From contig NC_086101.1 in the NCBI RefSeq assembly GCF_963921235.1, positions 26,970,001 through 27,034,000 of the forward strand: DNA of 64,000 bases, in the 5' to 3' direction. The notes below the pieces were generated by a model, which was not told the DNA's origin, made no database searches, and worked only from the letters and a program-made list of their open reading frames with translations. Both the position numbers and the translations under genes were made by a program. The stretch comes from Mobula hypostoma (Eukaryota). Positions 17,790 through 41,469 of the stretch are shown one piece after another (positions within the stretch are counted from its first letter, which is position 1; each line of letters opens with the position of its first letter).

Positions 17790-18513
17790 TTGCAAAGAAT
17801 AAGGAGCTTGATTCACTGAAGTTCGCCTACCTCCACAACAGGCCCACAGCAGATGCTATTTCACTGGCTCTCCAATTGGCTTTGGACCACCTGGACAACT
17901 GCAATGCATACAGCAGGCTGCTGTTTATCAAATATAGCTCGGCATTCAATTCCACCTTTCACCTCACCTACTAATCAAAAAGCTTCAAAGCCTGGGCCAC
18001 CCCACTTCCCTCTGCTACTTGTCCCTTGAATTCCTTATCTGGAGACCACAGTGCCGATCAATAATGGCATCTCCTCTTTATTGACAATCAACACAGGCAC
18101 ACCTCAAGGATATCTGCTTAGCTCATTGCTCTATTCTCCCTACACCTAAGACTGTGCGGCTAGACACAACTCAAGTACCACCTGTAAATTCGCCAGTGAC
18201 ACGAAAGTTGTTGGCAGAATCTCAGATGATGACCAGGAGGCACACAGAATTGAGATAGATTGGCTGGTTGAATGGTATTGCAACAACTAATTTGTACTCA
18301 ATATCAGCAAGACTTCAAGAAGGAGAACTCAGGAGAATACACTCTCATAGAGAAAGGGGGAGTCAGCACTGGAAAGGGTGAGCAGCTTTAAGTTCCTGTG
18401 TGCCAACATCTCCTAGGATTTATATTAGGTCCTACATGGATGTAATCTCAAAGAAAGCACACCAGCGGCTTTACTTCATTTGGAGTTTGAGGAGATTTGG
18501 TATGTCACTAAGG
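17790..18513 (+). mobile_element. Rex1/Babar LINE, left half (host of the nested stack)
   Basis: LDSLKFAYLHNRPTADAISLAL...RLLFIKYSSAFNS, PQGYLL, KFASDT, QRLYFIWSLRRFGMS; resumes at 40450 after the duplication TATGTCACTAAGG. Confidence 0.8.
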
Positions 18514-19104
18514 TGAGGTGAAGGCCTTTGTTGGTCAGAGTTGACCACGGATATTGTGCCCCAGCTGTCTAGATACACAAGCCTGGGCAACACGATATGG
18601 AGAGCGAGCTGTTGCCCATGTAGCAAGCTTCCCCTCTCCACGCATCTGATGAACCTGGAGGAATGGCAGAGACTGATACAGATTGGTACCAGCAGTGTTG
18701 CAGGAGTTGCCAGTCAGCATTGACTCAATTTAGGACTACCTTAGGAATACCAGCTCTGGATATTTCCCTTGGGGTTTATTCCCAAAGCCTTCCCCATGAG
18801 TGGGTACAGCTGCAAGACACCGAAGGTTTGAGATCAGAATTTTCCTTCTCCTAAGTAGAGTGCCAACCACAGCTGACAAGCCCCACCTGCCCAAAGTGAC
18901 AGGTTCTAAGGGCCCACCAGCAACGCCAGTTTGCCCTTTCTCCTGTCGGTGGAAACGGTTCTGCTGGGCTTAGTGGCTAAGCCACATGTGAAGGCCAGGA
19001 GCTGGACTTGGTTGTCAGAGGCTACTTGAGGAGATGCATGCCATTGGGAGCATTTAATGGGTAGTGGGAACTTTGTCCCCATTACCGTCCCCAGCCATAA
19101 TAAC
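18514..19104 (-). mobile_element. Non-coding SINE-like retroposon (possibly RTE-mobilised; family unassigned)
   Basis: Related in reverse complement to 62356-62743; short-repeat 3' tail (GGCCTTCACCTCA on the minus strand); 13-bp TSD TATGTCACTAAGG at 18501-18513 and 40450-40462. Confidence 0.65.
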
Positions 19105-20569
19105 CTTATGCAGATATCCCACCTCTCCCGGAAGTTCCGGGAGTCTCTCGCATATTAATAGTGGCTCCCTGATGCCCGCAAATTATATACCATATCCCAG
19201 AAATCAATAATTTTGAGAGCGAGAGAGAGAGAAAGCAAGCGAGAGAGCGAGAGAGAACGAGAGAGAAAGCAAGTGAGAGCGCGAGAGAGAGAGAGTGAGC
19301 ACGGGAACGACCACGAGAGAGAGAACAAGAGAAAGCAAGTGAGAGCGCGAGAGAGAAAGCGTGCGAGTGAGAGAGAGCGTGAGAGCGACCACGAGAGAGA
19401 GCAAGAAAGCGAGAGCGCGCGTGAGAGAGAGAGAGAGAGAGAGAGAGAACAAGTCATGGCAGAGTGTTCCAAAATAAGAAAATATAAAATGTACGTCACC
19501 TCAGACTACACTAAAGTGTATCCCTGCCTAATAGGGGTCAAAAATAATGACAGTGTTGCTCACTGCGCTGTTTGTAACAGTGACTTTTCTCTTGCCCATG
19601 GTGGGGTTAAGACTGTAAAAGACGTGTTGAGGTGAGTTTAACAGGTGTCACTCGTTCATTAGCATTGCTAACGTTATTTAAACTGTCGTCGTCAATGATG
19701 CCGTCACTCGCATCCCCTCTATTTCCCGCACTCCAGCCCTCACCCCATCCTCCCATCACCACAACAGGGACAGAGTTCCCCTTGTCCTCACCTACCACCC
19801 CACCAGCCTCCGGATCCAGCACATTATCCTCCGCAACTTCTGCCACCTTCAACAGGACCCCACCACAAAGCACATCTTTCCCTCTCCACGCCTCTTTGCT
19901 TTTAACAGGGATCGGTCCCTCCGCAACTCCCTGGTCCACACGTCCCTACCCACAGATCTCCCACCCGGCACTTATCCCTGTAAGCATAAGTGCTACACCT
20001 GTCCCTGCACCTCCTCTCTTGCCAACATTGCCCAAACTGTCATGGTCCGGTCCGTAAAGTCCGTATTCCGGTTCACGGTCTGCTCCATCAATCCTTGCTC
20101 CAGGTTTTCTTATCTACCCTGTTTCTGTTCTTGTTGAGCTAATTGAGGCAGCTGATGCTCGTTGGGGCTGGCTGCATAAATACCTTCAGAGACCCAGGCA
20201 TGGTGGCTGGACTATCCTGTCCTTACTCCTTGTATCCCTTGCTCTTCCTTCTGTTTCCTCGTCTGAAACCCTGTCTTGTCTTGCCGGTAACTCTCACCTC
20301 GCCTGAAGTTCTCGTCTCGCCTTGCTTTGCCAGAAGCTTCGCGTCGTCTGGCCTGCAGTCTTGTCCTGGAGGCACCCTGTACCTAGGTCCCTTCCTGACC
20401 CTTACCTCCGCCCAGGTAAGCCAGGCCATCTTGCCAATACCTGGGATTGGTTCTATCCCTTCCAGTCCCTTGTCTCTGCTGGGTGGAGATCTTCACCCTG
20501 CCCACGTGATTTGCTCCCTGCCTAGCAGGAGCCTGCCAAGCCTTGCCCCAGGTCTCCTGCTTCCAGCAT

Positions 20570-23500
20570 CGTCTCGCCTCGCCTCAAGGCTCCTGCCCCC
20601 AGCCTCGCCTCACCTCGCCTCAAGGCTCCTGCCCCTAGCCTCGCCTCGCCTCAAGGCTCCTACCCCAGCCTCGCCTCGCCTCGCCTCGCCTCAAGGCTCC
20701 TGCCCCCAGCCTCGCCTCGCCTCGCCTCAAGGCTCCTGCCCCTAGCCTCGCCTCGCCTCAAGGCTCCTACCCCAGCCTCGCCTCGCCTCGCCTCAAGGCT
20801 CCTGCCCCCAGCCTCGCCTCGCATCGCTTCAAGGGTCCTGCCCCCAGCCTCGACTCGCCTCAAGGCTCCTGCCCCCAGCCTCGACTCGCCTCAAGGCTCC
20901 TGCCCCCAGCCTGGACTCGCCTCAAGGCTCCTGCCCCCAGCCTCGCCTCACCTCAAGGCTCCTGCCCCCAGGCTCGCCTCGCCTCGCTTCAAGGCTCCTG
21001 CCCCCAGCCTCGCCTCGCCTCGCTTCTAGGCTCCTGCCCCCAGCCTCGCCTCGCATCGCTTCAAGGGTCCTGCCCCCAGCCTCGACTCGCCTCAAGGCTC
21101 CTGCCCCCAGCCTCGACTCGCCTCAAGGCTCCTGCCCCCAGCCTGGACTCGCCTCAAGGCTCCTGCCCCCAGCCTCGCCTCGCCTCAAGGCTCCTGCCCC
21201 CAGCCTCGCCTCGCCTCGCTTCAAGGCTCCTGCCCCCAGCCTCGCCTCGCCTCGCTTCAAGGCTCCTGCCCCCAGCCTCGCCTCGCCTCGCTTCAAGGCT
21301 CCTGCCCCCAGCCTCGCCTCGCCTCGCTTCAAGGCTCCTGCCCCCAGGCTCGCCTCGCCTCAAGGCTCCTGCCCCCAGCCTCGCCTCGCCTCAAGGCTCC
21401 TGCCCCCAGCCTCGCCTCACGTCGCCTCAAGGCTCCTGCCCCCAGCCTCACCTCGCCTCACCTCAAGGCTGCTGCCCCCATCCTCGCCTCGCCTCGCCTC
21501 AAGACTCCTCCCCACAGCCTTGCCTCCCCTCGCCTCAAGGCTCATACCCTCAGCCTCGCAGCCCGTCGCCTCAAGGCTCCTGCCCTCAGCCTCGCCTCAC
21601 CTCACCTCAAGGCTGCTGCCCTCAGCCTCACGACGCCTCCCCTCAAGGCTCCTGCCCCCAGCCTCGCCTCGCCTCACCTCAAGGCTCCTGCCCTCAGCCT
21701 CGCCTAGCCTCGCCTCAAGGCTCCTGTCCTCAGCCTCGCCTCGCCTCACCTCAAGGCTCCTGCCCCCAGCCTCGCCTCGTCTCGCCTCTATGCTCCTGCC
21801 CCCAGCCTCGCCTCGCCTCTACGCTCCTTTCCCCAGCCTCGCCTCGCCTCAAGGTTCCTGCCCCCAGCCTCGCCTCACCTCCCCTCAAGGCTCCTTCCCC
21901 CAGACTGAACTCGCCTCGCCTCGCCTCACCTCAAGGCTCCTGCCCTCAGCCTTGCCTCGCTTCGCCTCGCCTCAAGACTCTTGCCCTGAGCCACGGCTCG
22001 CCTCAGCTCAAGGCTCCTGCCCCCAACCTCATCTCGCCTCGCCTCAAGGCTCCTGCCCCCAGCCTTGCCTCACCTCTAAGCTCCTGCCCCAGCCTCGCCT
22101 CGCCTCAAGGCTCCTGCCCTCAGCCTCGCGTCGCCTCCCCTCAAGGCTCCTGCCCCAAGCCTCCCCTCACCACAAGGCCCCTGCCCCGAGCCTCGCCTCG
22201 CCTCAAGCCTCCAGCCCCCAGCCTCGCCTCAAGGCTCCTGCCCCCAGCCTCGTCTCGCCTCGCCGCAAGGCTCCTGCCCCCAACCTCACCTTGCCTCGCC
22301 TCAAGGCTCCTGCCCCCAGCCTCGCCTCGCCTCGCCTCAAGGCTCCTGCCCCCAGCCTCGCCTCGACTCGCCTCAAGACTCCTGCCCCCAGCCTCGCCTC
22401 GCCTCAAGGCTCCTGCCCCCAGCCTCGCCTCGACTCGCCTCAAGGCTCCTGCCCCCAGCCTCGCCTCGCCTCAAGGCTCCTGCCCCCAGCCTCGCCTCGC
22501 CTCAAGGCTCCTGCCCTCAGCCTCGCCTCGCCTCAAGGCTCCTACCCTCAGCCTCGCAGCCCGTCGCCTCAAGGCTCCTGCCCTCAGCCTAGCCTCACCT
22601 CACCTCAAGGCTACTGCCCTCAGCCTCACGACGCCTCCCCTCAAGGCTCCTGCCCTCAGCCTCACCTCACCTCGCCTCAAGGCTCCAGCCCCCAGCCTCG
22701 CCTCGCCTCACCTCAAGGCTCCTGCCCTCAGCCTCGCCTAGCCTCGCCTCAAGGCTCCTACCCTCAGCCTCGCAGCCCCTCGCCTCAAGGCTCCAGCCCT
22801 CAGCCTCGCCTCACCTCACCTCAAGGCTCCTGCCCTCAGCCTCGCGTCGCCTCTCCTCAAGGCTCCTGCCCTCAGCCTCGCCTCGCCTCAAGGCTCCTGT
22901 CCTCAGCCTCGCCTCGCCTCACGTCAAGGCTCCTGCCCCCAGCCTCGCCTCGTCTTGCCTCTACGCTCCTGCCCCCAGCCTCGCCTCACCTCTACGCTCC
23001 TCTCCCCAGCCTCGCCTCGCCTCAAGGTTCCTGCCCCCAGCCTCGCCTCACCTCGCCTCAAGGCTCCTTCCCCCAGCCTCATCTCGCCTCGCCTCGCCTC
23101 GCCTCAAGGCTCCTGACCTCAGCCTCGCCTCACCTCACCTCAAGGCTCCTGCCCTCAGCCTCGCCTCGCCTCACCTCAAGGCTCCTGCCCCCAAACTCAT
23201 CTCGCCTCGCCTCTAAGCTCCTGCCCCCAGCCTCGCCTCGCCTCTAAGCTCCTGCCCCCAGCCTTGCCTCGCCTCCAAGCTCCTGCCCCCAGCCTCGCCT
23301 CGCCTCAAGGCTCCTGCCCTCAGCCTCGCGTCGCCTCCCCTCAAGGCTCCTGCCCCCAGCCTCCCCTCACCACAAGGCTCCTGCCCCGAGCCTCGCCTCA
23401 CCTCAAGGCTCCTGCCCCCAGCCTCGCCTCAAGGCTCCTGCCCCCAGCCTCGTCTCGCCTCGCCTCCAGGCTCCTGCCCCCAGCTTCGCCTCACCTTAAT

Positions 23501-26500
23501 GCTCCTGCCCCGAGCCTCGCCTCGCCTCAAGGCTCCTGCGCCCAGCCTCGCCTCGCCTCAAGGCTCCTGCCCCCAACCTCACCTCGCCTCGCCTCAAGGC
23601 TCCTGCCCCCAGCCTCGCCTCGCCTCGCCTCAAGGCTCCTGCCCCCAGCCTCGCCTTGCCTCAAGGCTCCTGCCCCCAGCCTCGCCTCGCCTCAAGGCTC
23701 CTGCCCTCAGCCTCGCCTCGCGTCAAGGCTCCTGCCCTCAGCCTCGCCTCGCCTCAAGGCTCCTGCCCTCAGCCTCGCCTCACCTCTACGCTCCTGTCCC
23801 CAGCCTCGCCTCGCCTCAAGGTTCCTGCCCCGAGCCTTGCCTCACCTCAAGGCTCCTGCCCTCAGCTTCGCCTCGCCTCGCCTCAAGGCTCCTGCCCTCA
23901 GCCTCGCCTCACCTCACCTCAAGGCTCCTTCCCTCAGCCTCGCCTCGCCTCGCCTCAAGGCTCCTGCCCCCAAACTCATCTCGCCTCGCCTCTAAGCTCC
24001 TGCCCCCAGCCTCGCCTCGCCTCTAAACTCCTGCCCCCAGCCTCGCCTCGCCTCTAAGCTCCTGCCCCCAGCCTCGCCTCGCCTTTAAGCTCCTGCCCCC
24101 AGCCTCGCCTCGCCTCAAGGCTCCTGCCCTCAGCCTCGCGTAGCCTCCCCTCAAGGCTCCTGCCCCCAGACTCCCCTCACCACAAGGCTTCTGCCCCGAG
24201 CCTCGCCTCACCTCAAGGCTCCTGCCCCCAGCCTCGCCTCAAGGCTCCTGCCCCCAGCCTCGTCTCGACTCGCCTCCAGGCTCCTGCCCCCAGCCTCGCC
24301 TCGCCTCAAGGTTCCTGCCCCCAACCTCTCCTCGCCTCGCCTCAAGGCTCCTGCCCCCAGCCTCGCCTCGCCTCGCCTCACCTCAAGGCTCCTGCCCCCA
24401 GCCTCGCCTCGCCTCAAGGCTCCTGCCCTCAGCCTCGCCTCGCCTCAAGGCTCCTGCCCTCAGCCTCGCCTCGCCTCGCCTCAAGGCTCCAGCCCCCAGC
24501 CTCGTCTCGCCTCTAGGCTCCTGCCCCCATCCTCACCTCGCCTCTCAGCTCCGGCCCCCAGCCTCGCCTCGCCTCGCCTCAAGGCTCCTGGCCCCAGCCT
24601 CGCCTCGCCTCTAAGCTCCTGCCCCCAGCCTCGCCTCACCTCAAGGCTCCTGCCCCGAGCCTCGCCTCGCCTCAAGGCTCATGCCCCCAAACTCATCTCG
24701 CCTCGCCTCTAAGCTCCTGCCCCCAGCCTCGCCTCGCCTCTAAGCTCCTGCCCCCAGCGTTGCCTCGCCTCTAAGCTCCTGCCCCCAGCCTCGCCTTGCC
24801 TCAAGGCTCCTGCCCTCAGCCTCGCGTCGCCTCCCCTCAAGGCTCCTGCCCCCAGCCTCCCCTCACCACAAGGCTCCTGCCCCGAGCCTCGCCTCACCTC
24901 AAGGCTCCTGCCCCCAGCCTCGCCTCAAGGCTCCTGCCCCCAGCCTCGTCTCGCCTCGCCTCCAGGCTCCTGCCCCCAGCTTCGCCTCACCTTAATGCTC
25001 CTGCCCCGAGCCTCGCCTCGCCTCAAGGCTCCTGCGCCCAGCCTCGCCTCGCCTCAAGGCTCCTGCCCCCAACCTCACCTCGCCTCGCCTCAAGGCTCCT
25101 GCCCCCAGCCTCGCCTCGCCTCGCCTCAAGGCTCCTGCCCCCAGCCTCGCCTCACCTCAAGGCTCCTCCCCTCAGCCTCGCCTCACCTCAAGGCTCCTGC
25201 CCTCAGCCTCGCCTCGCCTCAAGGCTCCTGCCCTCAGCCTCGCCTCACCTCTACGCTCCTGTCCCCAGCCTCGCCTCGCCTCAAGGTTCCTGCCCCCAGC
25301 CTCGCCTCACCTCGCCTCAAGGCTCCTTCCCCCAGCCTCGCCTCGCCTCGCCTCGCCTCACCTCAAGGTTCCTGCCCCGAGCCTTGCCTCACCTCAAGGC
25401 TCCTGCCCTCAGCTTCGCCTCGGCTCGCCTCAAGGCCCCTGCCCTCAGCCTCGCCTCACCTCACCACAAGGCTCCTTCCCTCAGCCTCGCCTCGCCTCGC
25501 CTCAAGGCTCCTGCCCCCAAACTCATCTCGCCTCGCCTCTAAGCTCCTGCCCCCAGCCTCGCCTCGCCTCTAAGCTCCTGCCCCCAGCCTCGCCTCGCCT
25601 CTAAACTCCTGCCCCCAGCCTCGCCTCGGCTTTAAGCTCCTGCCCCCAGCCTCGCCTCGCCTCAAGGCTCCTGCCCTCAGCCTCGCGTAGCCTCCCCTCA
25701 AGGCTCCTGCCCCCAGCCTCCCCTCACCACAAGGCTCCTGCCCCGAGCCTCGCCTCACCTCAAGGCTCCTGCCCCCAGCCTCGCCTCAAGGCTCCTGCCC
25801 CCAGCCTCGTCTCGCCTCGCCTCCAGGCTCCTGCCCCCAGCCTCGCCTCGCCTCAAGGTTCCTGCCCCCAACCTCTCCTCGCCTCGCCTCAAGGCTCCTG
25901 CCCCCAGCCTCGCCTCGCCTCGCCTCAAGGCTCCTGCCCCCAGCCTCGCCTCGCCTCGCCTCAAGGCTCCTGCCCCCAGCCTCGCCTCGCCTCGCCTCAA
26001 GGCCCCTGCCCCCAGCCTCGCCTCGCCTCGCCTCAAGGCTCCTGCCCCCAGCCTCGCCTCGCCTCAAGACTCCTGCCCTCAGCCTCGCCTCGCCTCAAGG
26101 CTCCTGCCCTCAGCCTCGCCTCGCCTCGCCTCAAGGCTCCAGCCCCCAGCCTCGTCTCGCCTCTAGGCTCCTGCCCCCATCCTCACCTCGCCTCTCAGCT
26201 CCGGCCCCCAGCCTCGCCTCGCCTCGCCTCAAGGCTCCTGGCCCCAGCCTCGCCTCGCCTCTAAGCTCCTGCCCCCAGCCTCGCCTCACCTCAAGGCTCC
26301 TGCCCCGAGCCTCGCCTCACCTCAAGGCTCCTGCCCTCAGCCTTGCCTCGCTTCGCCTCGCCTCAAGGCTCTTGCCCTGAGCCTCGCCTCGCCTCACCTC
26401 AAGGCTCCTGCCCCCAACCTCATCTCGCCTCGCCTCAAGGCTCCTGCCCCCAGCCTTGCCTCACCTCTAAGCTCCTGCCCCAGCCTCGCCTCGCATCAAG

Positions 26501-29500
26501 GCTCCTGCCCTCAGCCTCGCGTTGCCTCCCCTCAAGGCTCCTGCCCCAAGCCTCCGCTCACCACAAGGCCCCTGCCCCGAGCCTCGCCTCGCCTCAAGGC
26601 TCCTGCCCCCAGCCTCGCCTCAAGGCTCCTGCCCCCAGCCTCGTCTCGCCTCGCCTCAAGGCTCCTGCCCCCAACCTCACCTTGCCTCGCCTCAAGGCTC
26701 CTGCCCCCAGCCTCGCCTCGCCTCGCCTCAAGGCTCCTGCCCCCAGCCTCGCCTCGTCTCAAGGCTCCTGCACCCAGCCTCGCCTCGCCTCAAGGCTCCT
26801 GCCCCCAGCCTCGTCTTGCCTCACCTCAAGGCTCCTGCCCTCAGCCTTGCCTCGCTTCGCCTCGCCTCAAGGCTCTTGCCCTGAGCCTCGCCTCGCCTAA
26901 CCTCAAGGCTCCTGCCCCCAACCTCATCTCGCCTCGCCTCAAGGCTCCTGCCCCCAGCCTTGCCTCACCTCTAAGCTCCTGCCCCAGCCTCGCCTCGCCT
27001 CAAGGCTCCTGCCCTCAGTCTCGCGTCGACTCCCCTCAAGGCTCCTGCCCCAAGCCTCCCCTCACCACAAGGCTCCTGCCCCCAGCCTCGCCTCGCCTCA
27101 AGGCTCCTGCCCCCAGCCTCGCCTCAAGGCTCCTGCCCCCAGCCTCGTCTCGCCTCGCCTCAAGGCTCCTGCCCCCAACCTCACCTTGCCTCGCCTCAAG
27201 GCTCCTGCCCCCAGCCTCGCCTCGCCTCGCCTCAAGGCTCCTGCCCCCAGCCTCGCCTCGTCTCAAGGCTCCTGCCCCCAGCCTCGCCTCGTCTCAAGGC
27301 TCCTGCCCCCAGCCTCGCCTCGCCTCAAGGCTCCTGCCCCCAGCCTCGCCTCGCCTCGCCTCAAGGCTCCTGCCCCCAAACTCATCTCGCCTCACCTCTA
27401 AGCTCCTGCCCCCAGCCTCGCCTTGCCTCTAAGCTCCTGCCCCCAGCCTCGCCTCGCCTCTAAGCTCCTGCCCCCAGCCTCGCCTCGCCTTTAAGCTCCT
27501 GCCCCCAGCCTCGCCTCGCCTCAAGGCTCCTGCCCTCAGCCTCGCGTAGCCTCCCCTCAAGGCTCCTGCCCCCAGCCTCGCATCACCACAAGGCTCCTGC
27601 CCCGAGCCTCGCCTCACCTCAAGGCTCCTGCCCTCAGCCTCACCTCGCCTCGCCTCAAGGCTCCAGCCCCCAGCCTCGTCTCGCCTCTCGGCTCCTGCCC
27701 CCATCCTCACCTCGCCTCTCAGCTCCGGCCCCCAACCTCGCCTCGCCTCGCCTCAAGGCTCCTGGCCCCAGCCTCGCCTCGCCTCTAAGCTCCTGCCCCC
27801 AGCCTCGCCTCGCCTCGCCTCAAGGCTCCTGGCCCCAGCCTCGCCTCGCCTCAAGGCTCCTGGCCCCAGCCTCGCCTCGCCTCAATACTCCAGCCCCCAG
27901 CCTCGCCTCGCCTCGCCTCAAGGCTCCTACCCTCAGCCTCGCAGCCCCTCGCCTCAAGGCTCCTGCCCCCAGCCTTGCCTCGCCTTGAGGCTCATGCCCC
28001 CAGCCTCGCCTCAAGGCTCCTGCCCCCAGCCTCGCCTCACCTCAAGGCTGCTGCCCCCAGCCTCGCCTCAAGGCTCCTGCTCCCAGACTCACCTCGCCTC
28101 AAGGCTCCTGCCCCCAACCTCGCCTCGCCTGAAGGCTCCTTCCCCCAGCCTCGCCTCGCCTCAAGGCTCCTGCCCTCAGCCTCGCCTCGCCTCCTCTCAA
28201 GGCTCCTGCCCCCAGCCTCGCCTCGCCTCAAGGCTCCTGCCCCCAGCCTCGCCTCGCCTCAAGGCTCCTGCCCCCATCCTCGCCTCACGTCGCCTCAAGG
28301 CTCCTGCCCCCAGCCTCGCCTCGCCTCGCCTCAAGGTTCCTGCCCCCAGCCTCGCCTCGCCTCGCCTCAAGGCACCTGCCCCCAGCCTCACCTCGCCTCA
28401 AGGCTCCTGCCCTCCGCTTCGCCTCGCCTCAAGGCTCCTGCCCCCAGCCTCGCCTCGCCTCAAGGCTCCTGTCCTCAACCTCGCTTCACCTCAAGGCTGC
28501 TGCCCTCAACCTTGCCTAACCTCAAGGCTCCTGCCCTCAACCTCGCCTCACTTCAAGGCTCCTGCCCCCAGCCTCGCCTCGCCTCGCCTCAAGGCTCCTG
28601 CCCCCAGCCTCGCCTTGCCTGAAGGCTCCTGCCCCCAGCCTTGCCTCCCCTCGCCTCAAGGCTCCTACACTCAGCCTCGCAGCCCTTCGCCTCAAGGCTC
28701 CTGCCCTCAGCCTCGCCTCACCTCACCTCAAGGCTACTGCCCTCAGCCTCGCGTCGCCTCTCCTCAAGGCTCCTGCCCTCAGCCTCACCTCACCTCGCCT
28801 CAAGGCTGCAGCCCCCAGCCTTGCCTCGCCTCACCTCAAGGCTCCTGCCCTCAGCCTCGCCTCGCCTCGATTAAGGCTCCTGTCCTCAGCCTCGCCTCGC
28901 CTCACCTCAAGGCTCCTGCCCCCAGCCTCGCCTCGTCTCGCCTCTACGCTCCTGCCCCCAGCCTCGCCTCACCTCTACGCTCCTCTCCCCAGCCTCGCCT
29001 CCCCTCGCCTCAAGGCTCCTTCCCCCAGCCTCATCTCGCCTCGCCTCGCCTCGCCTCAAGGCTCCTGCTCTCAGCCTCGCCTCACCTCACCTCAAGGCTC
29101 CTGCCCTCAGCCTCGCCTCGCCTCGCCTCAAGGCTCCTGCCCCCAAACTCATCTCGCCTCGCCTCTAAGCTCCTGCCCCCAGCCTCGCCTCGCCTCTAAG
29201 CTCCTGCCCCCAGCCTCGCGTCGCCTCCCCTCAAGGCTCCTGCCCCCAGCCTCCCCTCACCACAAGGCTCCTGCCCCGAGCCTCGCCTCACCTCAAAGCT
29301 CCTGCCCCCAGCCTCGCCTCAAGGCTCCTGCCCCCAGCCTCGTCTCGCCTCGCCTCCAGGCTCCTGCCCCCAGCTTCGCCTCACCTTAATGCTCCTGCCC
29401 CGAGCCTCGCCTCGCCTCAAGGCTCCTGCCCCCAGCCTCGTCTCGCCTCGCCTCCAGGCTCCTGCCCCCAGCTTCGCCTCACCTTAATGCTCCTGCCCCG

Positions 29501-32500
29501 AGCCTCGCCTCGCCTCAAGGCTCCTGCGCCCAGCCTCGCCTCGCCTCAAGGCTCCTGCCCCCAACCTCCCCTCGCCTCGCCTCAAGGCTCCTGCCCCCAG
29601 CCTCGCCTCGCCTCGCCTCAAGGCTCCTGCCCCCAGCCTCGCCTCGCCTCAAGGCTCCTGCCCTCAGCCTCGCCTCACCTCAAGGCTCCTGCCCTCAGCC
29701 TCGCCTCGCCTCAAGGCTCCTGCCCTCAGCCTCGCCTCACCTCTACGCTCATGTCCCCAGCCTCGCCTCGCCTCAAGGTTCCTGCCCCCAGCCTCGCCTC
29801 ACCTCGCCTCAAGGCTCCTTCCCCCAGCCTCGCCTCGCCTCGCCTCGCCTCACCTCAAGGTTCCTGCCCCGAGCCTTGCCTCACCTCAAGGCTCCTGCCC
29901 TCAGCTTCGCCTCGCCTCTCCTCAAGGCTCCTGCCCTCAGCCTCGCCTCACCTCACCTCAAGGCTCCTTCGCTCAGCCTCGCCTCAAGGCTCCTGCCCTC
30001 AGCCTCGCCTCACCTCACCTCAAGGCTCCTTCCCTCAGCTTCGCCTTGCCTCGCCTCAAGGCTCCTGCCCTCAGCCTCGCCTCACCTCACCTCAAGGCTC
30101 CTGCCCTCAGCCTCGCCTCGCCTCGCCTCAAGGCTCCTGCCCCCAAACTCATCTCGCCTCACCTCTAAGCTCCTGCCCCCAGCCTCGCCTTGCCTCTAAG
30201 CTCCTGCCCCCAGCCTCGCCTCGCCTCTAAGCTCCTGCCCCCAGCCTCGCCTCGCCTTTAAGCTCCTGCCCCCAGCCTCGCCTCGCCTCAAGGCTCCTGC
30301 CCTCAGCCTCGCGTCGCCTCCCCTCAAGGCTCCTGCCCCCAGCCTCGCATCACCACAAGGCTCCTGCCCCGAGCCTCGCCTCACCTCAAGGCTCCTGCCC
30401 TCAGCCTCACCTCGCCTCGCCTCAAGGCTCCAGCCCCCAGCCTCGTCTCGCCTCTCGGCTCCTGCCCCCATCCTCACCTCGCCTCTCAGCTCCGGCCCCC
30501 AACCTCGCCTCGCCTCGCCTCAAGGCTCCTGGCCCCAGCCTCGCCTCGCCTCTAAGCTCCTGCCCCCAGCCTCGCCTCGCCTCGCCTCAAGGCTCCTGGC
30601 CCCAGCCTCGCCTCGCCTCAAGGCTCCTGGCCCCAGCCTCGCCTCGCCTCAATACTCCAGCCCCCAGCCTCGCCTCGCCTCGCCTCAAGGCTCCTACCCT
30701 CAGCCTCGCAGCCCCTCGCCTCAAGGCTCCTGCCCCCAGCCTTGCCTCGCCTCGAGGCTCATGCCCCCAGCCTCGCCTCAAGGCTCCTGCCCCCAGCCTC
30801 GCTTCACCTCAAGGCTGCTGCCCCCAGCCTCGCCTCAAGGCTCCTGCTCCCAGACTCACCTCGCCTCAAGGCTCCTGACCCCAACCTCGCCTCGCCTGAA
30901 GGCTCCTTCCCCCAGCCTCGCCTCGCCTCAAGGCTCCTGCCCTCAGCCTCGCCTCGCCTCATCTCAAGGCTCCTGCCCCCAGCCTCGCCTCGCCTCAAGG
31001 CTCCTGCCCCCAGCCTCGCCTCGCCTCAAGGCTCCTGCCCCCATCCTCGCCTCACGTCGCCTCAAGGCTCCTGCCCCCAGCCTCGCCTCGCCTCGCCTCA
31101 AGGTTCCTGCCCCCAGCCTCGCCTCGCCTCGCCTCAAGGCACCTGCCCCCAGCCTCACCTCGCCTCAAGGCTCCTGCCCTCCGCTTCGCCTCGCCTCAAG
31201 GCTCCTGCCCCCAGCCTCGCCTCGCCTCAAGGCTCCTGTCCTCAACCTCGCTTCACCTCAAGGCTGCTGCCCTCAACCTTGCCTAACCTCAAGGCTCCTG
31301 CCCTCAACCTCGCCTCACTTCAAGGCTCCTGCCCCCAGCCTCGCCTCGCCTCGCCTCAAGGCTCCTGCCCCCAGCCTCGCCTTGCCTGAAGGCTCCTGCC
31401 CCCAGCCTTGCCTCCCCTCGCCTCAAGGCTCCTACCCTCAGCCTCGCAGCCCTTCGCCTCAAGGCTCCTGCCCTCAGCCTCGCCTCACCTCACCTCAAGG
31501 CTACTGCCCTCAGCCTCGCGTCGCCTCTCCTCAAGGCTCCTGCCCTCAGCCTCACCTCACCTCGCCTCAAGGCTGCAGCCCCCAGCCTTGCCTCGCCTCA
31601 CCTCAAGGCTCCTGCCCTCAGCCTCGCCTCGCCTCGATCAAGGCTCCTGTCCTCAGCCTCGCCTCGCCTCACCTCAAGGCTCCTGCCCCCAGCCTCGCCT
31701 TGCCTGAAGGCTCCTGCCCCCAGCCTTGCCTCCCCTCGCCTCAAGGCTCCTACCCTCAGCCTCGCAGCCCTTCGCCTCAAGGCTCCTGCCCTCAGCCTCG
31801 CCTCACCTCACCTCAAGGCTACTGCCCTCAGCCTCGCGTCGCCTCTCCTCAAGGCTCCTGCCCTCAGCCTCACCTCACCTCGCCTCAAGGCTGCAGCCCC
31901 CAGCCTTGCCTCGCCTCACCTCAAGGCTCCTGCCCTCAGCCTCGCCTCGCCTCGATCAAGGCTCCTGTCCTCAGCCTCGCCTCGTCTCACCTCAAGGCTC
32001 CTGCCCCCAGCCTCGCCTCGTCTCGCCTCTACGCTCCTGCCCCCAGCCTCGCCTCACCTCTACGCTCCTCTCCCCAGCCTCGCCTCCCCTCGCCTCAAGG
32101 CTCCTTCCCCCAGCCTCATCTCGCCTCGCCTCGCCTCGCCTCAAGGCTCCTGCTCTCAGCCTCGCCTCACCTCACCTCAAGGCTCCTGCCCTCAGCCTCG
32201 CCTCGCCTCGCCTCAAGGCTCCTGCCCCCAAACTCATCTCGCCTCGCCTCTAAGCTCCTGCCCCCAGCCTCGCCTCGCCTCTAAGCTCCTGCCCCCAGCC
32301 TCGCGTCGCCTCACCTTAATGCTCCTGCCCCGAGCCTCGCCTCGCCTCAAGGCTCCTGCCCCCAGCCTCGTCTCGCCTCGCCTCCAGGCTCCTGCCCCCA
32401 GCTTCGCCTCACCTTAATGCTCCTGCCCCGAGCCTCGCCTCGCCTCAAGGCTCCTGCGCCCAGCCTCGCCTCGCCTCAAGGCTCCTGCCCCCAACCTCAC

Positions 32501-35500
32501 CTCGCCTCGCCTCAAGGCTCCTGCCCCCAGCCTCGCCTCGCCTCGCCTCAAGGCTCCTGCCCCCAGCCTCGCCTCGCCTCAAGGCTCCTGCCCTCAGCCT
32601 CGCCTCACCTCAAGGCTCCTGCCCTCAGCCTCGCCTCGCCTCAAGGCTCCTGCCCTCAGCCTCGCCTCACCTCTACGCTCCTGTCCCCAGCCTCGCCTCG
32701 CCTCAAGGTTCCTGCCCCCAGCCTCGCCTCACCTCGCCTCAAGGCTCCTTCCCCCAGCCTCGCCTCGCCTCGCCTCGCCTCACCTCAAGGTTCCTGCCCC
32801 GAGCCTTGCCTCACCTCAAGGCTCCTGCCCTCAGCTTCGCCTCGCCTCTCCTCAAGGCTCCTGCCCTCAGCCTCGCCTCACCTCACCTCAAGGCTCCTTC
32901 GCTCAGCCTCGCCTCAAGGCTCCTGCCCTCAGCCTCGCCTCACCTCACCTCAAGGCTCCTTCCCTCAGCTTCGCCTTGCCTCGCCTCAAGGCTCCTGCCC
33001 TCAGCCTCGCCTCACCTCACCTCAAGGCTCCTGCCCTCAGCCTCGCCTCGCCTCAAGGCTCCTGCCCCCAAACTCATCTCGCCTCACCTCTAAGCTCCTG
33101 CCCCCAGCCTCGCCTCGCCTCTAAGCTCCTGCCCCCAGCCTCGCCTCGCCTTTAAGCTCCTGCCCCCAGCCTCGCCTCGCCTCTAAGCTCCTGCCCCCAG
33201 CCTCGCCTCGCCTTTAAGCTCCTGCCCCCAGCCTCGCCTCGCCTCAAGGCTCCTGCCCTCAGCCTCGCGTAGCCTCCCCTCAAGGCTCCTGCCCCCAGCC
33301 TCGCATCACCACAAGGCTCCTGCCCCGAGCCTCGCCTCACCTCAAGGCTCCTGCCCTCAGCCTCACCTCGCCTCGCCTCAAGGCTCCAGCCCCCAGCCTC
33401 GTCTCGCCTCTCGGCTCCTGCCCCCATCCTCACCTCGCCTCTCAGCTCCGGCCCCCAACCTCGCCTCGCCTCGCCTCAAGGCTCCTGGCCCCAGCCTCGC
33501 CTCGCCTCTAAGCTCCTGCCCCCAGCCTCGCCTCGCCTCGCCTCAAGGCTCCTGGCCCCAGCCTCGCCTCGCCTCAAGGCTCCTGGCCCCAGCCTCGCCT
33601 CGCCTCAATACTCCAGCCCCCAGCCTCGCCTCGCCTCGCCTCAAGGCTCCTACCCTCAGCCTCGCAGCCCCTCGCCTCAAGGCTCCTGCCCCCAGCCTTG
33701 CCTCGCCTCGAGGCTCATGCCCCCAGCCTCGCCTCAAGGCTCCTGCCCCCAGCCTCGCCTCACCTCAAGTCTGCTGCCCCCAGCCTCGCCTCAAGGCTCC
33801 TGCTCCCAGACTCACCTCGCCTCAAGGCTCCTGCCCCCAACCTCGCCTCGCCTGAAGGCTCCTTCCCCCAGCCTCGCCTCGCCTCAAGGCTCCTGCCCTC
33901 AGCCTCGCCTCGCCTCATCTCAAGGCTCCTGCCCCCAGCCTCGCCTCGCCTCAAGGCTCCTGCCCCCAGCCTCGCCTCGCCTCAAGGCTCCTGCCCCCAT
34001 CCTCGCCTCACGTCGCCTCAAGGCTCCTGCCCCCAGCCTCGCCTCGCCTCGCCTCAAGGTTCCTGCCCCCAGCCTCGCCTCGCCTCGCCTCAAGGCACCT
34101 GCCCCCAGCCTCACCTCGCCTCAAGGCTCCTGCCCTCCGCTTCGCCTCGCCTCAAGGCTCCTGCCCCCAGCCTCGCCTCGCCTCAAGGCTCCTGTCCTCA
34201 ACCTCGCTTCACCTCAAGGCTGCTGCCCTCAACCTTGCCTAACCTCAAGGCTCCTGCCCTCAACCTCGCCTCACTTCAAGGCTCCTGCCCCCAGCCTCGC
34301 CTCGCCTCGCCTCAAGGCTCCTGCCCCCAGCCTCGCCTTGCCTGAAGGCTCCTGCCCCCAGCCTTGCCTCCCCTCGCCTCAAGGCTCCTACCCTCAGCCT
34401 CGCAGCCCTTCGCCTCAAGGCTCCTGCCCTCAGCCTCGCCTCACCTCACCTCAAGGCTACTGCCCTCAGCCTCGCGTCGCCTCTCCTCAAGGCTCCTGCC
34501 CTCAGCCTCACCTCACCTCGCCTCAAGGCTGCAGCCCCCAGCCTTGCCTCGCCTCACCTCAAGGCTCCTGCCCTCAGCCTCGCCTCGCCTCGATCAAGGC
34601 TCCTGTCCTCAGCCTCGCCTCGCCTCACCTCAAGGCTCCTGCCCCCAGCCTCGCCTCGTCTCGCCTCTACGCTCCTGCCCCCAGCCTCGCCTCACCTCTA
34701 CGCTCCTCTCCCCAGCCTCGCCTCCCCTCGCCTCAAGGCTCCTTCCCCCAGCCTCATCTCGCCTCGCCTCGCCTCGCCTCAAGGCTCCTGCTCTCAGCCT
34801 CGCCTCACCTCACCTCAAGGCTCCTGCCCTCAGCCTCGCCTCGCCTCGCCTCAAGGCTCCTGCCCCCAAACTCATCTCGCCTCGCCTCTAAGCTCCTGCC
34901 CCCAGCCTCGCCTCGCCTCTAAGCTCCTGCCCCCAGCCTCGCGTCGCCTCCCCTCAAGGCTCCTGCCCCCAGCCTCCCCTCACCACAAGGCTCCTGCCCC
35001 GAGCCTCGCCTCACCTCAAGGCTCCTGCCCCCAGCCTCGCCTCAAGGCTCCTGCCCCCAGCCTCGTCTCGCCTCAAGGCTCCTGCCCCCAGCCTCGTCTC
35101 GCCTCGCCTCCAGGCTCCTGCCCCCAGCTTCGCCTCACCTTAATGCTCCTGCCCCGAGCCTCGCCTCGCCTCAAGGCTCCTGCGCCCAGCCTCGCCTCGC
35201 CTCAAGGCTCCTGCCCCCAACCTCCCCTCGCCTCGCCTCAAGGCTCCTGCCCCCAGCCTCGCCTCGCCTCGCCTCAAGGCTCCTGCCCCCAGCCTCGCCT
35301 CGCCTCAAGGCTCCTGCCCTCAGCCTCGCCTCACCTCAAGGCTCCTGCCCTCAGCCTCGCCTCGCCTCAAGGCTCCTGCCCTCAGCCTCGCCTCACCTCT
35401 ACGCTCCTGTCCCCAGCCTCGCCTCGCCTCAAGGTTCCTGCCCCCAGCCTCGCCTCACCTCGCCTCAAGGCTCCTTCCCCCAGCCTCGCCTCGCCTCGCC

Positions 35501-38390
35501 TCGCCTCACCTCAAGGTTCCTGCCCCGAGCCTTGCCTCACCTCAAGGCTCCTGCCCTCAGCTTCGCCTCGCCTCTCCTCAAGGCTCCTGCCCTCAGCCTC
35601 GCCTCACCTCACCTCAAGGCTCCTTCGCTCAGCCTCGCCTCAAGGCTCCTGCCCTCAGCCTCGCCTCACCTCACCTCAAGGCTCCTTCCCTCAGCTTCGC
35701 CTTGCCTCGCCTCAAGGCTCCTGCCCTCAGCCTCGCCTCACCTCACCTCAAGGCTCCTGCCCTCAGCCTCGCCTCGCCTCGCCTCAAGGCTCCTGCCCCC
35801 AAACTCATCTCGCCTCACCTCTAAGCTCCTGCCCCCAGCCTCGCCTTGCCTCTAAGCTCCTGCCCCCAGCCTCGCCTCGCCTCTAAGCTCCTGCCCCCAG
35901 CCTCGCCTCGCCTTTAAGCTCCTGCCCCCAGCCTCGCCTCGCCTCAAGGCTCCTGCCCTCAGCCTCGCGTAGCCTCCCCTCAAGGCTCCTGCCCCCAGCC
36001 TCGCATCACCACAAGGCTCCTGCCCCGAGCCTCGCCTCACCTCAAGGCTCCTGCCCCCAGCCTCGCCTCAAGCCTCCTGCTCCCAGCCTCGTCTCGCCTC
36101 GCCTCCAGGCTCCTGCCCCCAGCGTCGCCTCGCCTCAAGGCTCCTGCCCCCAACCTCTCCTCGTCTCGCCTCAAGGCTCCTGCCCCCAGCCTCGCCTTGC
36201 CTCGCCTCAAGGCTCCTGCCCTCAGCCTCGCCTCGCCTCAAGGCTCCTGCCCTCAGCCTCGCCTCGCCTCGCCTCGCCTCAAGGCTCCAGCCCCCAGCCT
36301 CGTCTCGCCTCTAGGCTCCTGCCCCCATCCTCACCTCGCCTCTCAGCTCCGGCCCCCAGCCTCGCCTCGTCTCGCCTCAAGGCTCCTGGCCCCAGCCTCG
36401 CCTCGCCTCTAAGCTCCTGCCCCCAGCCTCGCCTCGCCTCGCCTCTAGGCTCCAGGCCCCAGCCTCGCCTCGCCTCAAGGCTCCTGGCCCCAGCCTCGCC
36501 TCGCCTCAATACTCCTGCCCCCAGCCTCGCCTCGCCTCGCCTCAAGGCTCCTACCCTCAGCCTTGCAGCCCCTCGCCTCAAGGCTCCTGCCCCCAGCCTT
36601 GCCTCGCCTCGCCTACCCCCAGCCTCGCCTCGCCTCAAGGCTCCTGCCCCGAGCCTCGCCTTGCCTCAAGGCTCCTGCCCCCAACCTCACCTCGCCGCGC
36701 CTCAAGGCTCCTGCCCCCAACCTCACCTCGCCTCGCCTCAAGGCTCCTGCACCCAGCCTCGCCTCGCCTCTAGGCTCCTGCCCCCAGCCTCATCTCGCCT
36801 CGCCTCAAGGCTCCTGCCCCCAGCCTCGCCTCGCCTCAAGGCTCCTGCCCCCAGCCTCGCCTCGCCTCAAGGCTGCTGCCCCCAGCCTTGCCTCAAGGTT
36901 CCTGCCCCCAGCCTCACCTCACCTCAAGGCTCCTGCCCCCAGCCTCGCCTCACCTCAAGGCTCCTGCTCCCAGCCTCGCCTCACCTTAAGGCTGCTGCCC
37001 CCAGCCTCGCCTCAAGGCTCCTGCTCCCAGACTCACCTCTCCTCAAGGCTCCTGCCGCCAACCTCACCTCGCCTCGCCTCAAGGCTCCGTCCCCCAGCCT
37101 TGCCTCGCCTCAAGGCTCCGGCCCCCAGCCTCGCTTCGCCTCAAGGCTCCGGCCCCCAGTCTCGCCTCGCCTCAAGGCTCCTGCCCTCAGCCCTGCCTTG
37201 CCTCGTCTCTTGCCTAGCCTCAAGCCTGAAGACTCCAGCCTCGTCCTGCCTGCCTGCCATGCCTCGTCCTTGCCTAGTTCTGGGGTCCGAGCCACAGGCA
37301 AGACCCGGGTACCCCAGTCTCGCCTCGCCTCTAGGCTCCTGCCCCCATCCTCACCTCGCCTCAAGGCTACTGCACCCATCCTCACCTCGCCTCTCAGCTC
37401 CGGCCCCCAGCCTCGCCTCGCCTCGCCTCAAGGCTCCTGGCCCCAGCCTCGCCTCGCCTCAATACTCCTGCCCCCAACCTCGCCTCGCCTCGCCTCAAGG
37501 CTCCTACCCTCAGCCTCGCAGCCCCTCGCCTCAAGGCTCCTGCCCCCAGCCTTGCCTCGCCTCGCCTCGAGGCTCCTACCCCTTGCCTCGCCTCGCCTCG
37601 CCACAAGGCTCCTGCCCCCAGCCTCGCCTTGCCTCAAGGCTCCTGCCCCCAACCTCACCTCGCCTCGCCTCAAGGCTCCTACCCCCAGCCTCGCCTCGCC
37701 TCGCCACAAGGCTCCTGCCCCGAGCCTCGCCTTGCCTCAAGGCTCCTGCCCCTAACCTCACCTCGCCTCGCCACAAGGCTCCTGCCCCCAGCCTCGCCTC
37801 ACCTCACCTCAAGGCTCCTGCCCTCAGCCTCGCCTCGCCTCGCCTCAAGGCTCCTGCCCCCAACCTCACCTCGTCTCGCCTCAAGGCTCCTGCACCCAGC
37901 CTCGCCTCGCCTCTAGGCTCCTGCCCCCAGCCTCGCCTCACCTCAAGGCTCCTGCCCCCAGCCTCGCCTCGCCTCAAGGCTCCTGCCCCCAGCCTCGCCT
38001 CGCCTCAAGGCTGCTGCCCCCAGCCTCGCCTCAAGGTTCCTGCCCCCAGCCTCACCTCACCTCAAGGCTCCTGCCCCCAGCCTCGCCTCACCTCAAGGCT
38101 CCTGCCCCCAGCCTCGCCTCACCTCAAGGCTCCTGCCCCCAGCCTCGCCTCACCTCAAGGCTCCTGCCCCCAGCCTCGCCTCACCTTAAGGCTGCTGCCC
38201 CCAGCCTCGCCTCAAGGCTCCTGTTCCCAGACTCACCTCGCCTCAAGGCTCCTGCCCCCAACCTCGCCTCGCCTCGCCTCAAGGCTCCAGCCCCCAGCCT
38301 CGCCTCGCCTCAAGGCTCCGGCCCCCAGCCTCGCCTCGCCTCAAGGCTCCGGCCCCCAGTCTCGCCTCGCCTCAAGGCTCCTGCCCTCAG
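20570..38390. repeat. GC-rich satellite: monomer CAAGGCTCCTGCCCCCAGCCT + (CGCCT)n, mostly 26/31/36 bp, with higher-order repeats
   Basis: Read directly across ~17.8 kb; roughly 550-600 monomers estimated from length. Many variants (CCCTC, CACCT, TGCCT, CTAAGC, CTACGC). One non-monomer block at 37191-37312. Confidence 0.97.
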
Positions 38391-38569
38391 CCCTGCCTTG
38401 CCTCGTCTCTTGCCTAGCCTCAAGCCTGAATACTCCAGCCTCGTCCTGCCTGCCTGCCATGCCTCATCCTTGCCTAGTTCTGGGGTCCGAGCCACAGGCA
38501 AGACCCGGGTACTGGGTCCTTGTCCAGTCTCTGGCTTGGAGTCTATCCAGCCTCCAGTCTCCAGCATAG

Positions 38570-39340
38570 CCTCTAGCCTGAGGACTCCAGCCTCCAGCCT
38601 AGCCTCTAGCCTGAAGACTCCAGCCTCCTGCCTGGCCTCTAGCCTGAAGACTCCAGCCTCCTGCCTAGCCTCTAGCCTGAAGACTCCAGCCTCCTGCCTA
38701 GCCTCTAGCCTCTAGCCAAGCCAAGCCAAGCCTCGCCTCTAGCCTCTAGCCAAGCCAAGCCAAGTCTCTAGCCTCTTGCCAAGCCAAGTCTCTAGCCTCT
38801 AGCCTCTTGCCAAGCCAAGCCAAGTCTCTAGTCTCTAGCCTCTAGCCAAGCCAAGCCAAGTCTCTAGTCTCTAGCCTCTAGCCAAGCCAAGCCTAGCCTC
38901 TAGCCAAGCCAAGCCAAGCCTCTAGCCTCTAGCCAAGCCTCTAGCCTCTAGCCTCTTGCCAAGCCAAGTCTCTAGCCTCTAGCCTCTTGCCAAGCCGTCT
39001 CTAGCCTCTAGCCTCTTGCCAAGCCAAGCCAAGTCTCTAGTCTCTTGCCAAGCCAAGTCTCTAGCCTCTAGCCTCTTGCCAAGCCAAGTCAAGTCTCTAG
39101 CCTCTAGCCTCTAGCCTCATGCCAAGCCAGGTCTCTAGCCTCTTACCTCTTGTCAAGCCAAGCCACGTCTCTAGACTCTAGCCTCTAGCCAAGCCAAGCC
39201 AAGTTTCTAGCCTCTAGCCTCTAGCCTCTTGCCAAGCCAAGCCAAGTCTCTAGCCTCTAGCCTCTAGCCTCTTGCCAAGCCATGTCTCTGGCCTCTAGCC
39301 TTTTGCCAAGCCAAGCCAAGTCTCTAGCCTCTAGCCTCAA
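38570..39340. repeat. Second repeat zone: 33-bp unit (GCCTCTAGCCTGAAGACTCCAGCCTCCTGCCTA) x4-5, then interleaved GCCAA and GCCTCTA/GTCTCTA units
   Basis: Seen directly; the 33-mer gives the 11-aa LASSLKTPASC repeat in the ORF track. Confidence 0.9.
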
Positions 39341-40219
39341 GCCTGAAGACACCAGCCTCGTCCTGCCTGCCAAGCCTCGTCCTTGCCTAGTTCTGGGGTC
39401 TGAGCCAGAGGCAAGACCAGGTACTGAGTCCTTGTCCAGTCTCTAGCTCAGAGTCCAAGCCCGGGATGCTGGCTCTCTTGTCCAGTCTTGTTCCAGGTTC
39501 CTGGTTTTCCTGTCCATGTCCTTGCCCTCAGCCTGTATCCTAGTCCTGTCCCTAGTACTTTAGTGTCTGTGTCTTGCACTTGGGTCCGTTCCCAGCCACT
39601 GCCTTCTGACACAAACAGTCCTTCCAGGTGAGGCAACACTTCACTTGTCAGTCTGTTGGGGTCATCTATTGCATCCAGTGCTCCTGATGTGGCCTCCTCT
39701 ACATCAGTGAAACCCGACGCGGATTGGGGGACCGCTTCTTCGAGCACCTCCACTCTGTCCGTCACAACAGACAGGATCTCCCAGTAGCCACCCACTTCAA
39801 CTCTGCTTCCCATTCACATTCAGATATATCCATACATGGCCTCCTCTACTGCCATGATGAGGCTAAACTCAGGTTGGAGGAGCAACACCTCATACACCGT
39901 CTGGGTAGTCTCCAGCCCCTTGCTATGAACATAGAATTCTCCAACTTCCAGTAATTCCCTCCCCCTCCCTTCCTCTATCCCTATTTCACTCTGCCCCTCC
40001 CCCAGCTGCCTATCACCTCCCTCTTGGTTCCACCTCCTTCTACTACCCATTGTGTTTTCCCCTATTCCTTCTTCACCTTTCCTGCCTATCAGCTCCATGC
40101 TTCCCCCCTCCCCCACCCCTTTGTCTTTCTCCTTACTGATTTTTCACCTGGAACCTACCAGCCTTCTCCTTCCCACTCTCCCCCCACCTTCTTTATAGGG
40201 TCTCTCACCCTTCCCTCTA

Positions 40220-40256
40220 CAGTCCTGACAAGGGTTCCGGCCCGAAACATTGACTG
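40220..40256 (+). ncRNA. Degenerate minimal hammerhead ribozyme of the Penelope terminus (probably inactive)
   Basis: CAGTC CTGACAA GGGTTCCGGCCC GAAA CATT GACTG versus the intact copy at 61551; core CTGACGA and GAAACGTC are mutated. Confidence 0.6.
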
Positions 40257-40449
40257 ATCTTTTCCACGGATGCTGCCCAACCTGCTGAGTTCCTCCAGCG
40301 TGTTGTGAGCGTTATTTAAACTAGCTGACTAGCTGCTAAGGAGCTACTCTATTGCAGACATCCCACCTCTACCGGAAGTTCTGGGAATCTCCCACAAATT
40401 GATGGTGCTACCTCCCTGAAATGAGTTTTTGCAGGGTGGGATGTCTGCT

Positions 40450-40890
40450 TATGTCACTAAGGATTCTAGTAAATTTCTACAGATGTACCATGGAGATCAT
40501 TCTGACCGATCTGATATGAAGACTCCATCGCAGAGGACCAAAACAGGTTCCCTGGAAAGTTATTCTCAGTCAGCTCCATTACGGGCGAATCCCTGTACAC
40601 CATCGGAAGACACCTTCAAAATGCGCTGTCTCATGAGGAACTCTCAGCATCCGGGATAGGCCCTCTTATCATCACTACCATTAACGAGGTGATACAGGAG
40701 CCTGAAGACCGACAGTCAACGTCTTAGCAACATCTTTCCCTCTGCGCCATCAGACTTCTGAGCGGGCAATGAACACATGAACACTGTCTCACCTTTTCTC
40801 TTTCTATTTACTCACTTCATGTTACTTTCAGAATTTTTGTCGCGCACTGATACTCAAAACAACACGTTTGTGATAATAAACCTGATTCTG
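40450..40890 (+). mobile_element. Rex1/Babar LINE, right half and 3' end
   Basis: Continues the 17790-18513 copy (MSLRILVNFYRCTMEIILT-like); ends AATAAACCTGATTCTGATT. Confidence 0.75.
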
Positions 40891-41402: not shown

Positions 41403-41469
41403 ATGCCATTGAAAGAAGTTTCTGGGCTGTGCAGCTTCTATCTTTTTACCTACCTCGTTGTTGTTAACG
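41403..41469 (+). CDS. Exon 1 (signal peptide) of an Ig-superfamily receptor
   Basis: AAAATGC start; MPLKEVSGLCSFYLFTYLVVVN-(A); phase-1 donor G|GTAAGA matches the phase-1 acceptor at 42639. Confidence 0.75.

Follow-up and report, generated by a model that had tools for sequence, protein, structure and literature searches.

How does a transposable element (TE) of about 1 kb come to occupy almost 20 kb of a chromosome? The question is raised by a stretch of the Mobula hypostoma genome (64,000 nt; contig NC_086101.1 of assembly GCF_963921235.1, positions 26,970,001–27,034,000 of the forward strand; hereafter the window), in which a 19,574-bp insertion at 20038–39611 begins with TGTCA (20038–20042), ends with TGACA (39607–39611) and holds between these ends a 17.8-kb tandem array of short C-rich units. 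We propose that an element of ~1 kb resembling a long terminal repeat (LTR) integrated at this site and that one of its own repeat units then probably multiplied in place until the array reached its present length.

The insertion is bounded by a perfect 5-bp target-site duplication (TSD), CAAAC, which lies immediately outside both ends (20033–20037 on the left and 39612–39616 on the right). The surrounding sequence is itself a repeat, termed here the host repeat, and when the insertion and one CAAAC were deleted in silico the flanks aligned unbroken across the junction to a paralog of that repeat at 60840–61140, the empty site reading ...CCCAAAC/AGTCC... (slash at the junction). Public contigs of other host-repeat copies contain the same empty site, as ...CCCAAAC/AGTCCTTCCAGG... 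or ...CCCAAAC/AGTCCTTCC..., and contigs of uninserted copies end at the right TSD copy, with ...CATTCAGGGCCC ahead of it. Loose ends of such read-through contigs numbered 25–46 per DNA run at 20029 and 356–495 per DNA run at 39612, with a further 53 at the latter position in the RNA-labelled run X12. Because both the paralog and the public contigs read through an empty site, the insertion and its 5-bp TSD are real and do not reflect a chance match. The original prediction, that LTR-like termini and a perfect 5-bp TSD bracket the entire array, was thereby confirmed to the exact coordinate.

Siblings of the insertion were compared in Logan contigs of public runs at ≥85% identity, under three organism labels (A, B and C). 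Contigs on the 1.1-kb 5′ stretch, flank included, numbered ~17,000 per run in A and B and 8,600 in C, and those on the two end stretches, with their flanks and repeats, ~17,000–31,000 per run in A and B, mostly 90–99% alike. High copy number holds for the 5′ part (20038 to ~20470) as well as for the 3′ part in its entirety (38425–39611); within them, the 5′ unique part that begins with TGTCA (20038–20469) contains the only TATA-like motif, and a 3′ unique tail of ~150 bp (39463–39611), also high-copy, ends with TGACA. In two species, 222–249 contigs per run stop exactly at 20038 and continue into AT-rich flanks that are unlike one another (agreement 0.32–0.34), and 85–102 sibling contigs per run read ...TTTTGACA before they too enter unlike AT-rich flanks (loose end at 39596). 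Since siblings end at the same termini beside unlike flanks, the termini belong to a mobile family. That family is common to at least three related species (A, B and C), in which it is high-copy and has both unique ends; the copy studied here differs from the sibling majority at no fewer than 18 of 432 positions of the 5′ part (at least 4%). In both species the weak consensus of sibling flanks closes with GTTTG just before the 5′ terminus; this is the reverse complement of CAAAC and, at an agreement of 0.32–0.34, may be chance or a mild target preference.

On structural grounds we regard the element as likely the solo LTR of a retrotransposon or endogenous retrovirus, because it combines TG..CA ends, a 5-bp TSD, a size of ~1 kb and a high copy number. 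A two-LTR element was rejected, as the 5′ 533 bp occurs once in the 64-kb window. What stands of the earlier claim that the array lies within a single LTR is therefore that it lies within one mobile-element unit of a dispersed high-copy family, the name 'solo LTR' being drawn from termini, TSD and copy number. An open reading frame at 20143–20745 (region 1–145) gave no scoring match in a collection of 5.8 billion proteins, and a conserved 26-mer from the 5′ part, scanned as an exact pattern against metagenome contigs, returned 0 matches.

The bulk of the insertion is array 1 (20570–38395, + strand), which consists of ~510–540 C-rich units as estimated from Tandem Repeats Finder (TRF), unit spacing and a count of unit cores. 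TRF, which was used for array detection, reported array 1 at 20540–38409 with periods of 31, 36 and 67, ~524–543 copies and 76–77% matches. Each unit is made up of an 18-bp core (CAAGGCTCCTGCCCCCAG) and a variable number of CCTCG pentamers, and the core-to-core spacings fall into classes of 36 bp (167 cases), 31 bp (131), 26 bp (14), 46 bp (9) and 41 bp (4). At ≤3 mismatches, 510 cores were found in array 1 and none elsewhere in the window. The array is uninterrupted, with a flat GC content of 0.70 and 52% C on the given strand. By eye, a canonical G-quadruplex on the G-rich strand seems unlikely, as with one G5 tract per 31–36 bp the loops would be too long.

Two further tandem repeats lie 3′ of array 1 on the same strand and are native to the family. 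At 38546–38717 TRF identified a 33-bp minisatellite of 4.8 units that are 95% alike, and at 38696–39338 array 2, a variable-number tandem repeat (VNTR) of the family with 29/36-bp units of the GCCAAGCC...TCTAGCC type. In A and B, the 33-mer and the units of array 2 occur at high copy number among siblings, and sibling contigs skip 190–890 bp of array 2, so that siblings carry shorter versions; this repeat region is therefore native to the family and variable in length within it. The 31-bp unit of array 1 aligned to the native 33-mer with 25 of 31 positions identical and one 2-bp gap, scoring 16 against 3.0 ± 2.1 for shuffled sequence (0 of 300 shuffles).

Unit-like sequence also frames array 1, as scored against 300 shuffles per segment. 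A degenerate monomer-like stretch at 20260–20350 scored 17 against 8.7 ± 1.9 in shuffles (z 4.4, 0 of 300), while control segments were not unit-like; this stretch varies in length among siblings, whose contigs skip or repeat 45–91 bp of it, some with (GCCTT)n-like letters between. Directly beside the array is a transition zone (20470–20569) that is weakly monomer-like (z 2.9 for 20470–20562; the score was reached by 4–5 of 300 shuffles) and rare among siblings, with a summed sibling depth of 240–2,000 versus 60,000–150,000 for 20038–20435. The right border (38396–38470) is unit-like at z 4.5 relative to the array unit and z 11 relative to the 33-mer. It leads into a segment, X, which occurs three times on the + strand: copy 2 (38423–38545) forms the 3′ border of array 1, copy 3 (39340–39462) occupies the canonical position and is ~88% alike to copy 2, and a truncated copy 1 (37223–37310), 97.6% identical to copy 2, is stranded within array 1. 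Sibling contigs at copy 2 run on into tail sequence and not into 33-mers (loose end 38543), and sibling loose ends just upstream of segment X show unit-like motifs, including CCTCGCCTCAAG in organism C.

Homology of the unit to the 33-mer, unit-like borders and the absence of the core from the rest of the 64 kb together argue that the array grew from the element's own repeats. As judged from this homology, the array-1 unit is likely a diverged copy of the family's native 33-bp minisatellite, which would be its progenitor type. Among the seed motifs that the original prediction had placed in the unique sequence, a 16-mer at 20293 holds up as the only match at ≤2 mismatches in the insertion outside the array (the 44.4 kb outside the insertion contained 0 at the same threshold), as does the unit-like stretch around it; the motif at 20571 proved to be the start of the array itself. 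The short internal repeat invoked as the source is accordingly found in the element's own sequence, with the progenitor refined to the native 33-mer and the unit-like array borders.

The internal structure of array 1 bears on when its length was acquired. Higher-order layers, traced by 60-mer diagonals, are nested on the + strand. The youngest is a 2.8–3.0-kb block present three times in succession at 27341–36056 (27341–30107, 30108–33152 and 33153–36056; 60-mer offsets 2767, 2956 and 5723), the three blocks being 99.5–99.7% identical, with 15 of 2,523 aligned columns variable and a few indels of 5–318 bp. An intermediate layer at 23186–25927 consists of ~1.5-kb tandem duplications with identities of up to 98–99%, in which 23186–23656 pairs with 24682–25152 and 23814–24380 with 25361–25927. 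Towards the 3′ end (36401–38512), a ~1.1-kb duplication pairs 36401–37312 with 37524–38512 at 94.8% identity; it returned the 3′ border of array 1 to the interior of the array along with ~90 bp of unique sequence (X copy 1), which ends in GGGTAC at 37312, after which array units resume. A duplication that carries the border in this manner is possible only within this element. The best non-self identity of 400-bp segments is 99–100% in the centre, 90–99% at 23.2–27.2 kb and 89–95% at both edges, and array turnover by unequal exchange would be expected to leave a young centre between old edges in this way.

Composition and occurrence in public runs set the array apart from the rest of the element. 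Array 1 has an observed/expected CpG ratio of 0.65, compared with 0.41 for the 5′ part, 0.12 for the 3′ part and 0.28–0.47 for the flanks; CpG retention in the array fits either amplification from CpG-intact units after the rest had decayed or escape from methylation. In a comparison of species by the share of sampled words present in each public run, words of one 2.9-kb block were present at 0.35–0.45 in organism A runs, at 0.11–0.12 in B and below threshold in C, and words of the LTR ends and flanks reached up to 0.38 in A, up to 0.36 in B and 0.17 in C. The array variants are thus largely specific to species A. Summed contig depth at the first array units and at 20474–20549 was 10–400-fold below that of the 5′ unique part. 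In RNA-labelled runs of organism A, 0.00 of the sampled array words were present, which is weak evidence, and Logan contigs carry no strand.

Several features of the three 2.9-kb blocks are recorded here in their own right. A 318-bp tandem duplication (31354–31984) occurs in the middle block alone and, being missing from the other two, is later than the triplication. The 15 substitutions among the blocks comprise 1 CpG transition and 9 transversions, many of them C/A in CCTC(N)CCTC contexts, and the blocks carry about 59–60 CpGs per kb; hypomethylation, consensus errors or the conversion of unit variants into one another may lie behind this spectrum.

A number of observations count against growth in place or limit its extent. 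The oldest array layers, 89–95% alike on the 400-bp scale, have diverged about as far as the element has from its siblings, and a shorter array, perhaps of some kb, may already have been present at integration. The divergence of X copies 2 and 3 implies that part of the internal rearrangement is old or subfamily-specific. Species B has ~11–12% of the array words, and the unit type is thus not unique to this locus or species; where contig depth serves as evidence of rarity, depth in Logan contigs is not equivalent to copy number; and the array length is known from the assembly alone, Logan contigs being too short to span the array. Taken together with the length-variable repeats native to the family, the age of the outer layers, the array words of species B and the old X rearrangement would also accord with an element or subfamily that integrated with a long array already in it, in which case the array would have arrived with the transposed element instead of arising at this locus. 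We judge this unlikely. At least 8.7 kb of the array is the 99.5–99.7% identical triplication, and further duplicates of 1–1.5 kb are 95–99% alike; array-1 words, and likewise the sequence beside them, are scarce in comparison with the LTR ends; CpG retention is confined to the array; and it is hardly plausible that a multi-kb array was reverse-transcribed in both LTRs. An artefact of assembly, such as a false tandem duplication of the 2.9-kb block, is less probable still. Three near-identical blocks of that size are hard to assemble, but their 15 substitutions and several indels of 5–318 bp are able to anchor reads, no gap lies near the array (the only N run is at 61968–62129), and the block words occur in organism A runs at the same rate (0.35–0.45) as ordinary flank words (0.28–0.38). 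Growth in place after integration remains the preferred account, and the predicted expansion after insertion is upheld for a large part of the length, with the reservation that a shorter array may predate integration.

The identity of the enclosing unit and the source of the repeat admit alternatives of their own. The unit might be another mobile or inserted sequence with TG..CA ends, such as a non-autonomous element or an unusual transposon, within which the same expansion would have taken place; we regard this as possible, if doubtful. A consensus primer-binding site or polypurine tract is absent at both termini, where the flank consensus is AT-rich (agreement 0.32–0.48), and neither a paired copy nor a coding part was seen. 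The inverted terminal match spans 5 bp only, and the polyadenylation signals AATAAA and ATTAAA are absent from the unique parts on either strand. The single TATA-like motif, CATAAATA at 20175, is ambiguous in that it reads TATTTATG on the other strand. The motif itself is where the original prediction had put it, but the placement of the array 3′ of a TATA box, and with it the long C-rich repeat RNA that an active LTR promoter would make, stays conjectural given this two-way reading and the missing polyadenylation signals. What speaks against a different kind of element is the match to a classic solo LTR, with TG..CA ends, a 5-bp TSD, ~1 kb of length, copies in the thousands and enhancer-like tandem repeats in the interior. 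The only transposons with 5-bp TSDs known to us are Transib; Transib ends are long inverted repeats resembling recombination signal sequences, and such ends are absent from the insertion. There is, finally, next to no chance that an independent satellite, or an element carrying one, inserted into the LTR with boundaries of its own, a case that the original prediction had named as fatal to itself. The 100 bp to the left of the array are rare among siblings, as such an insertion would allow, but sharp borders and a second TSD are absent, the array passes gradually into unit-like LTR sequence on either side, no copy of the unit lies in the remaining 44 kb of the window, and the homology to the family 33-mer together with the unit-like borders led us to reject this explanation.

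The preferred reading, an LTR-like element whose own unit multiplied after integration, can be laid out as a series of steps. A dispersed element of ~1 kb would have integrated into an old Penelope-like repeat, making the 5-bp target duplication and bringing with it the C-rich short tandem repeats of its family (33-bp and 29/36-bp units), the length of which differs between copies. One diverged unit variant would then have multiplied in place, about 500-fold, to ~520 units (17.8 kb), enlarging the element to 19.6 kb. Slippage in the (CCTCG)n of each unit could have generated unit lengths 5 bp apart, and unequal exchange between sister chromatids or homologues at misaligned units could have generated the nested duplications of 0.23, 0.5, 1.1–1.5 and 2.9 kb, of which the triplication of the 2.9-kb block would be the latest and the 1.1–1.5-kb duplications would have come before. 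We infer slippage and unequal exchange as the growth processes from the arrangement of the repeats, and likewise a short array at the time of integration.

The array is best read as a neutral by-product, a nascent and, so far, essentially locus-specific satellite for which no function is indicated. Satellite DNA in the strict sense is abundant and forms many or very long arrays; here we found one locus, a word depth that is low beside that of the element family, and words largely specific to species A, so that expanded minisatellite or nascent satellite is the more fitting name. To the right of it, an immunoglobulin (Ig)-superfamily receptor gene region (41403–52281) starts 1.8 kb from the end of the insertion. 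A broader interpretation, to which we give little credence, is that the locus is one case of a lineage-wide habit in which TE-internal minisatellites, in LTRs and short interspersed elements (SINEs), inflate to 5–55 kb with their TSDs intact, the array being CpG-rich through escape from germline methylation. If the methylation-escape reading were true, an LTR-born, CpG-island-like block of 18 kb would lie 1.8 kb from the Ig-superfamily receptor gene region.

The host repeat extends from about 19000 to 20037 on the left of the insertion and from 39617 to 40700 (+ strand) on the right, where its paralogs and translation reveal a decayed GIY-YIG-like reading frame of Penelope type. In a language-model protein atlas this frame scored 0.95 to GIY-YIG clusters, and the host-repeat reading frames matched no family in Pfam; from its motif layout we take the frame to be the endonuclease end of a Penelope-like element. 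The host repeat is probably an old dispersed Penelope-like element. Its paralogs in the window lie at 60642–61343, 10172–10552 and 7560–7682; these several decayed copies are 67–88% alike, and the repeat is extremely abundant in runs of all three organism labels. Close to the left end of the insertion, it contains a degenerate GA-rich microsatellite (19215–19448; period 2, plus a 66-bp period). Elsewhere in the window, the assembly gap of 162 N directly adjoins a (GT)n / CGCGTGTG... microsatellite (61968–62272).

What makes the locus noteworthy is that a single copy has been inflated ~20-fold with its TSD intact and its growth history readable, in a cartilaginous fish. It would constitute a legible record of the birth of a tandem array, in which the birthplace is fixed by the TSD, the progenitor repeat is preserved beside the array and in siblings, and the order of growth can be followed from 5-bp slippage to a 2.9-kb triplication. 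Documented cases come mainly from plants, insects and bivalves, to which this one would add a cartilaginous fish, and, if similar loci prove real, TEs would regularly give rise to long arrays in large elasmobranch genomes.

The phenomenon is known in kind, from the VNTRs of LTR12 and from Ogre-derived plant satellites, and the locus reveals no new mechanism. Macas and co-workers reportedly described, in 2009, satellites that arose from tandem arrays inside Ogre/Tat elements. In the Ogre/Tat LTR retrotransposons of Lathyrus sativus, short internal arrays expand into long satellites, in a few copies to many kb (Vondrak et al. 2020, PMC7004042), and the locus described here resembles them in having length-variable tandem repeats within a dispersed LTR-like family, and in the higher-order periodicities of the expanded array. 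The Lathyrus repeats, however, lie in an internal 3′ untranslated region and their expansion is concentrated in primary constrictions, with many long arrays per satellite, whereas here the repeats lie within the LTR-like unit of one vertebrate copy whose TSD is intact, and the array unit has yet to become an abundant satellite. More generally, a 2025 review names the growth of TE-internal arrays through unequal exchange as a standard way in which satellites arise (PMC12628747), and satellite birth from TEs is the subject of an earlier study in so far as that review reports it (McGurk & Barbash 2018, as cited in PMC12628747). The locus conforms to these models of satellite birth, in which short internal TE arrays expand by unequal exchange; the models as reviewed are supported mostly by examples from insects, bivalves and plants, and the word 'vertebrate' is absent from the text of the review (PMC12628747). 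Human LTR12 (the HERV-9 LTR) and other TE-derived minisatellites contain variable tandem repeats, larger repeat numbers of LTR12 being found at fewer loci (Ahmed & Liang 2012, PMC3389668). As in LTR12, the repeat at this locus is native to the LTR-like unit, repeat length differs between copies, and expansion is by local duplication; LTR12 arrays are far shorter, whereas here a ~20-fold inflation has produced an array of 17.8 kb with a multi-level higher-order structure.

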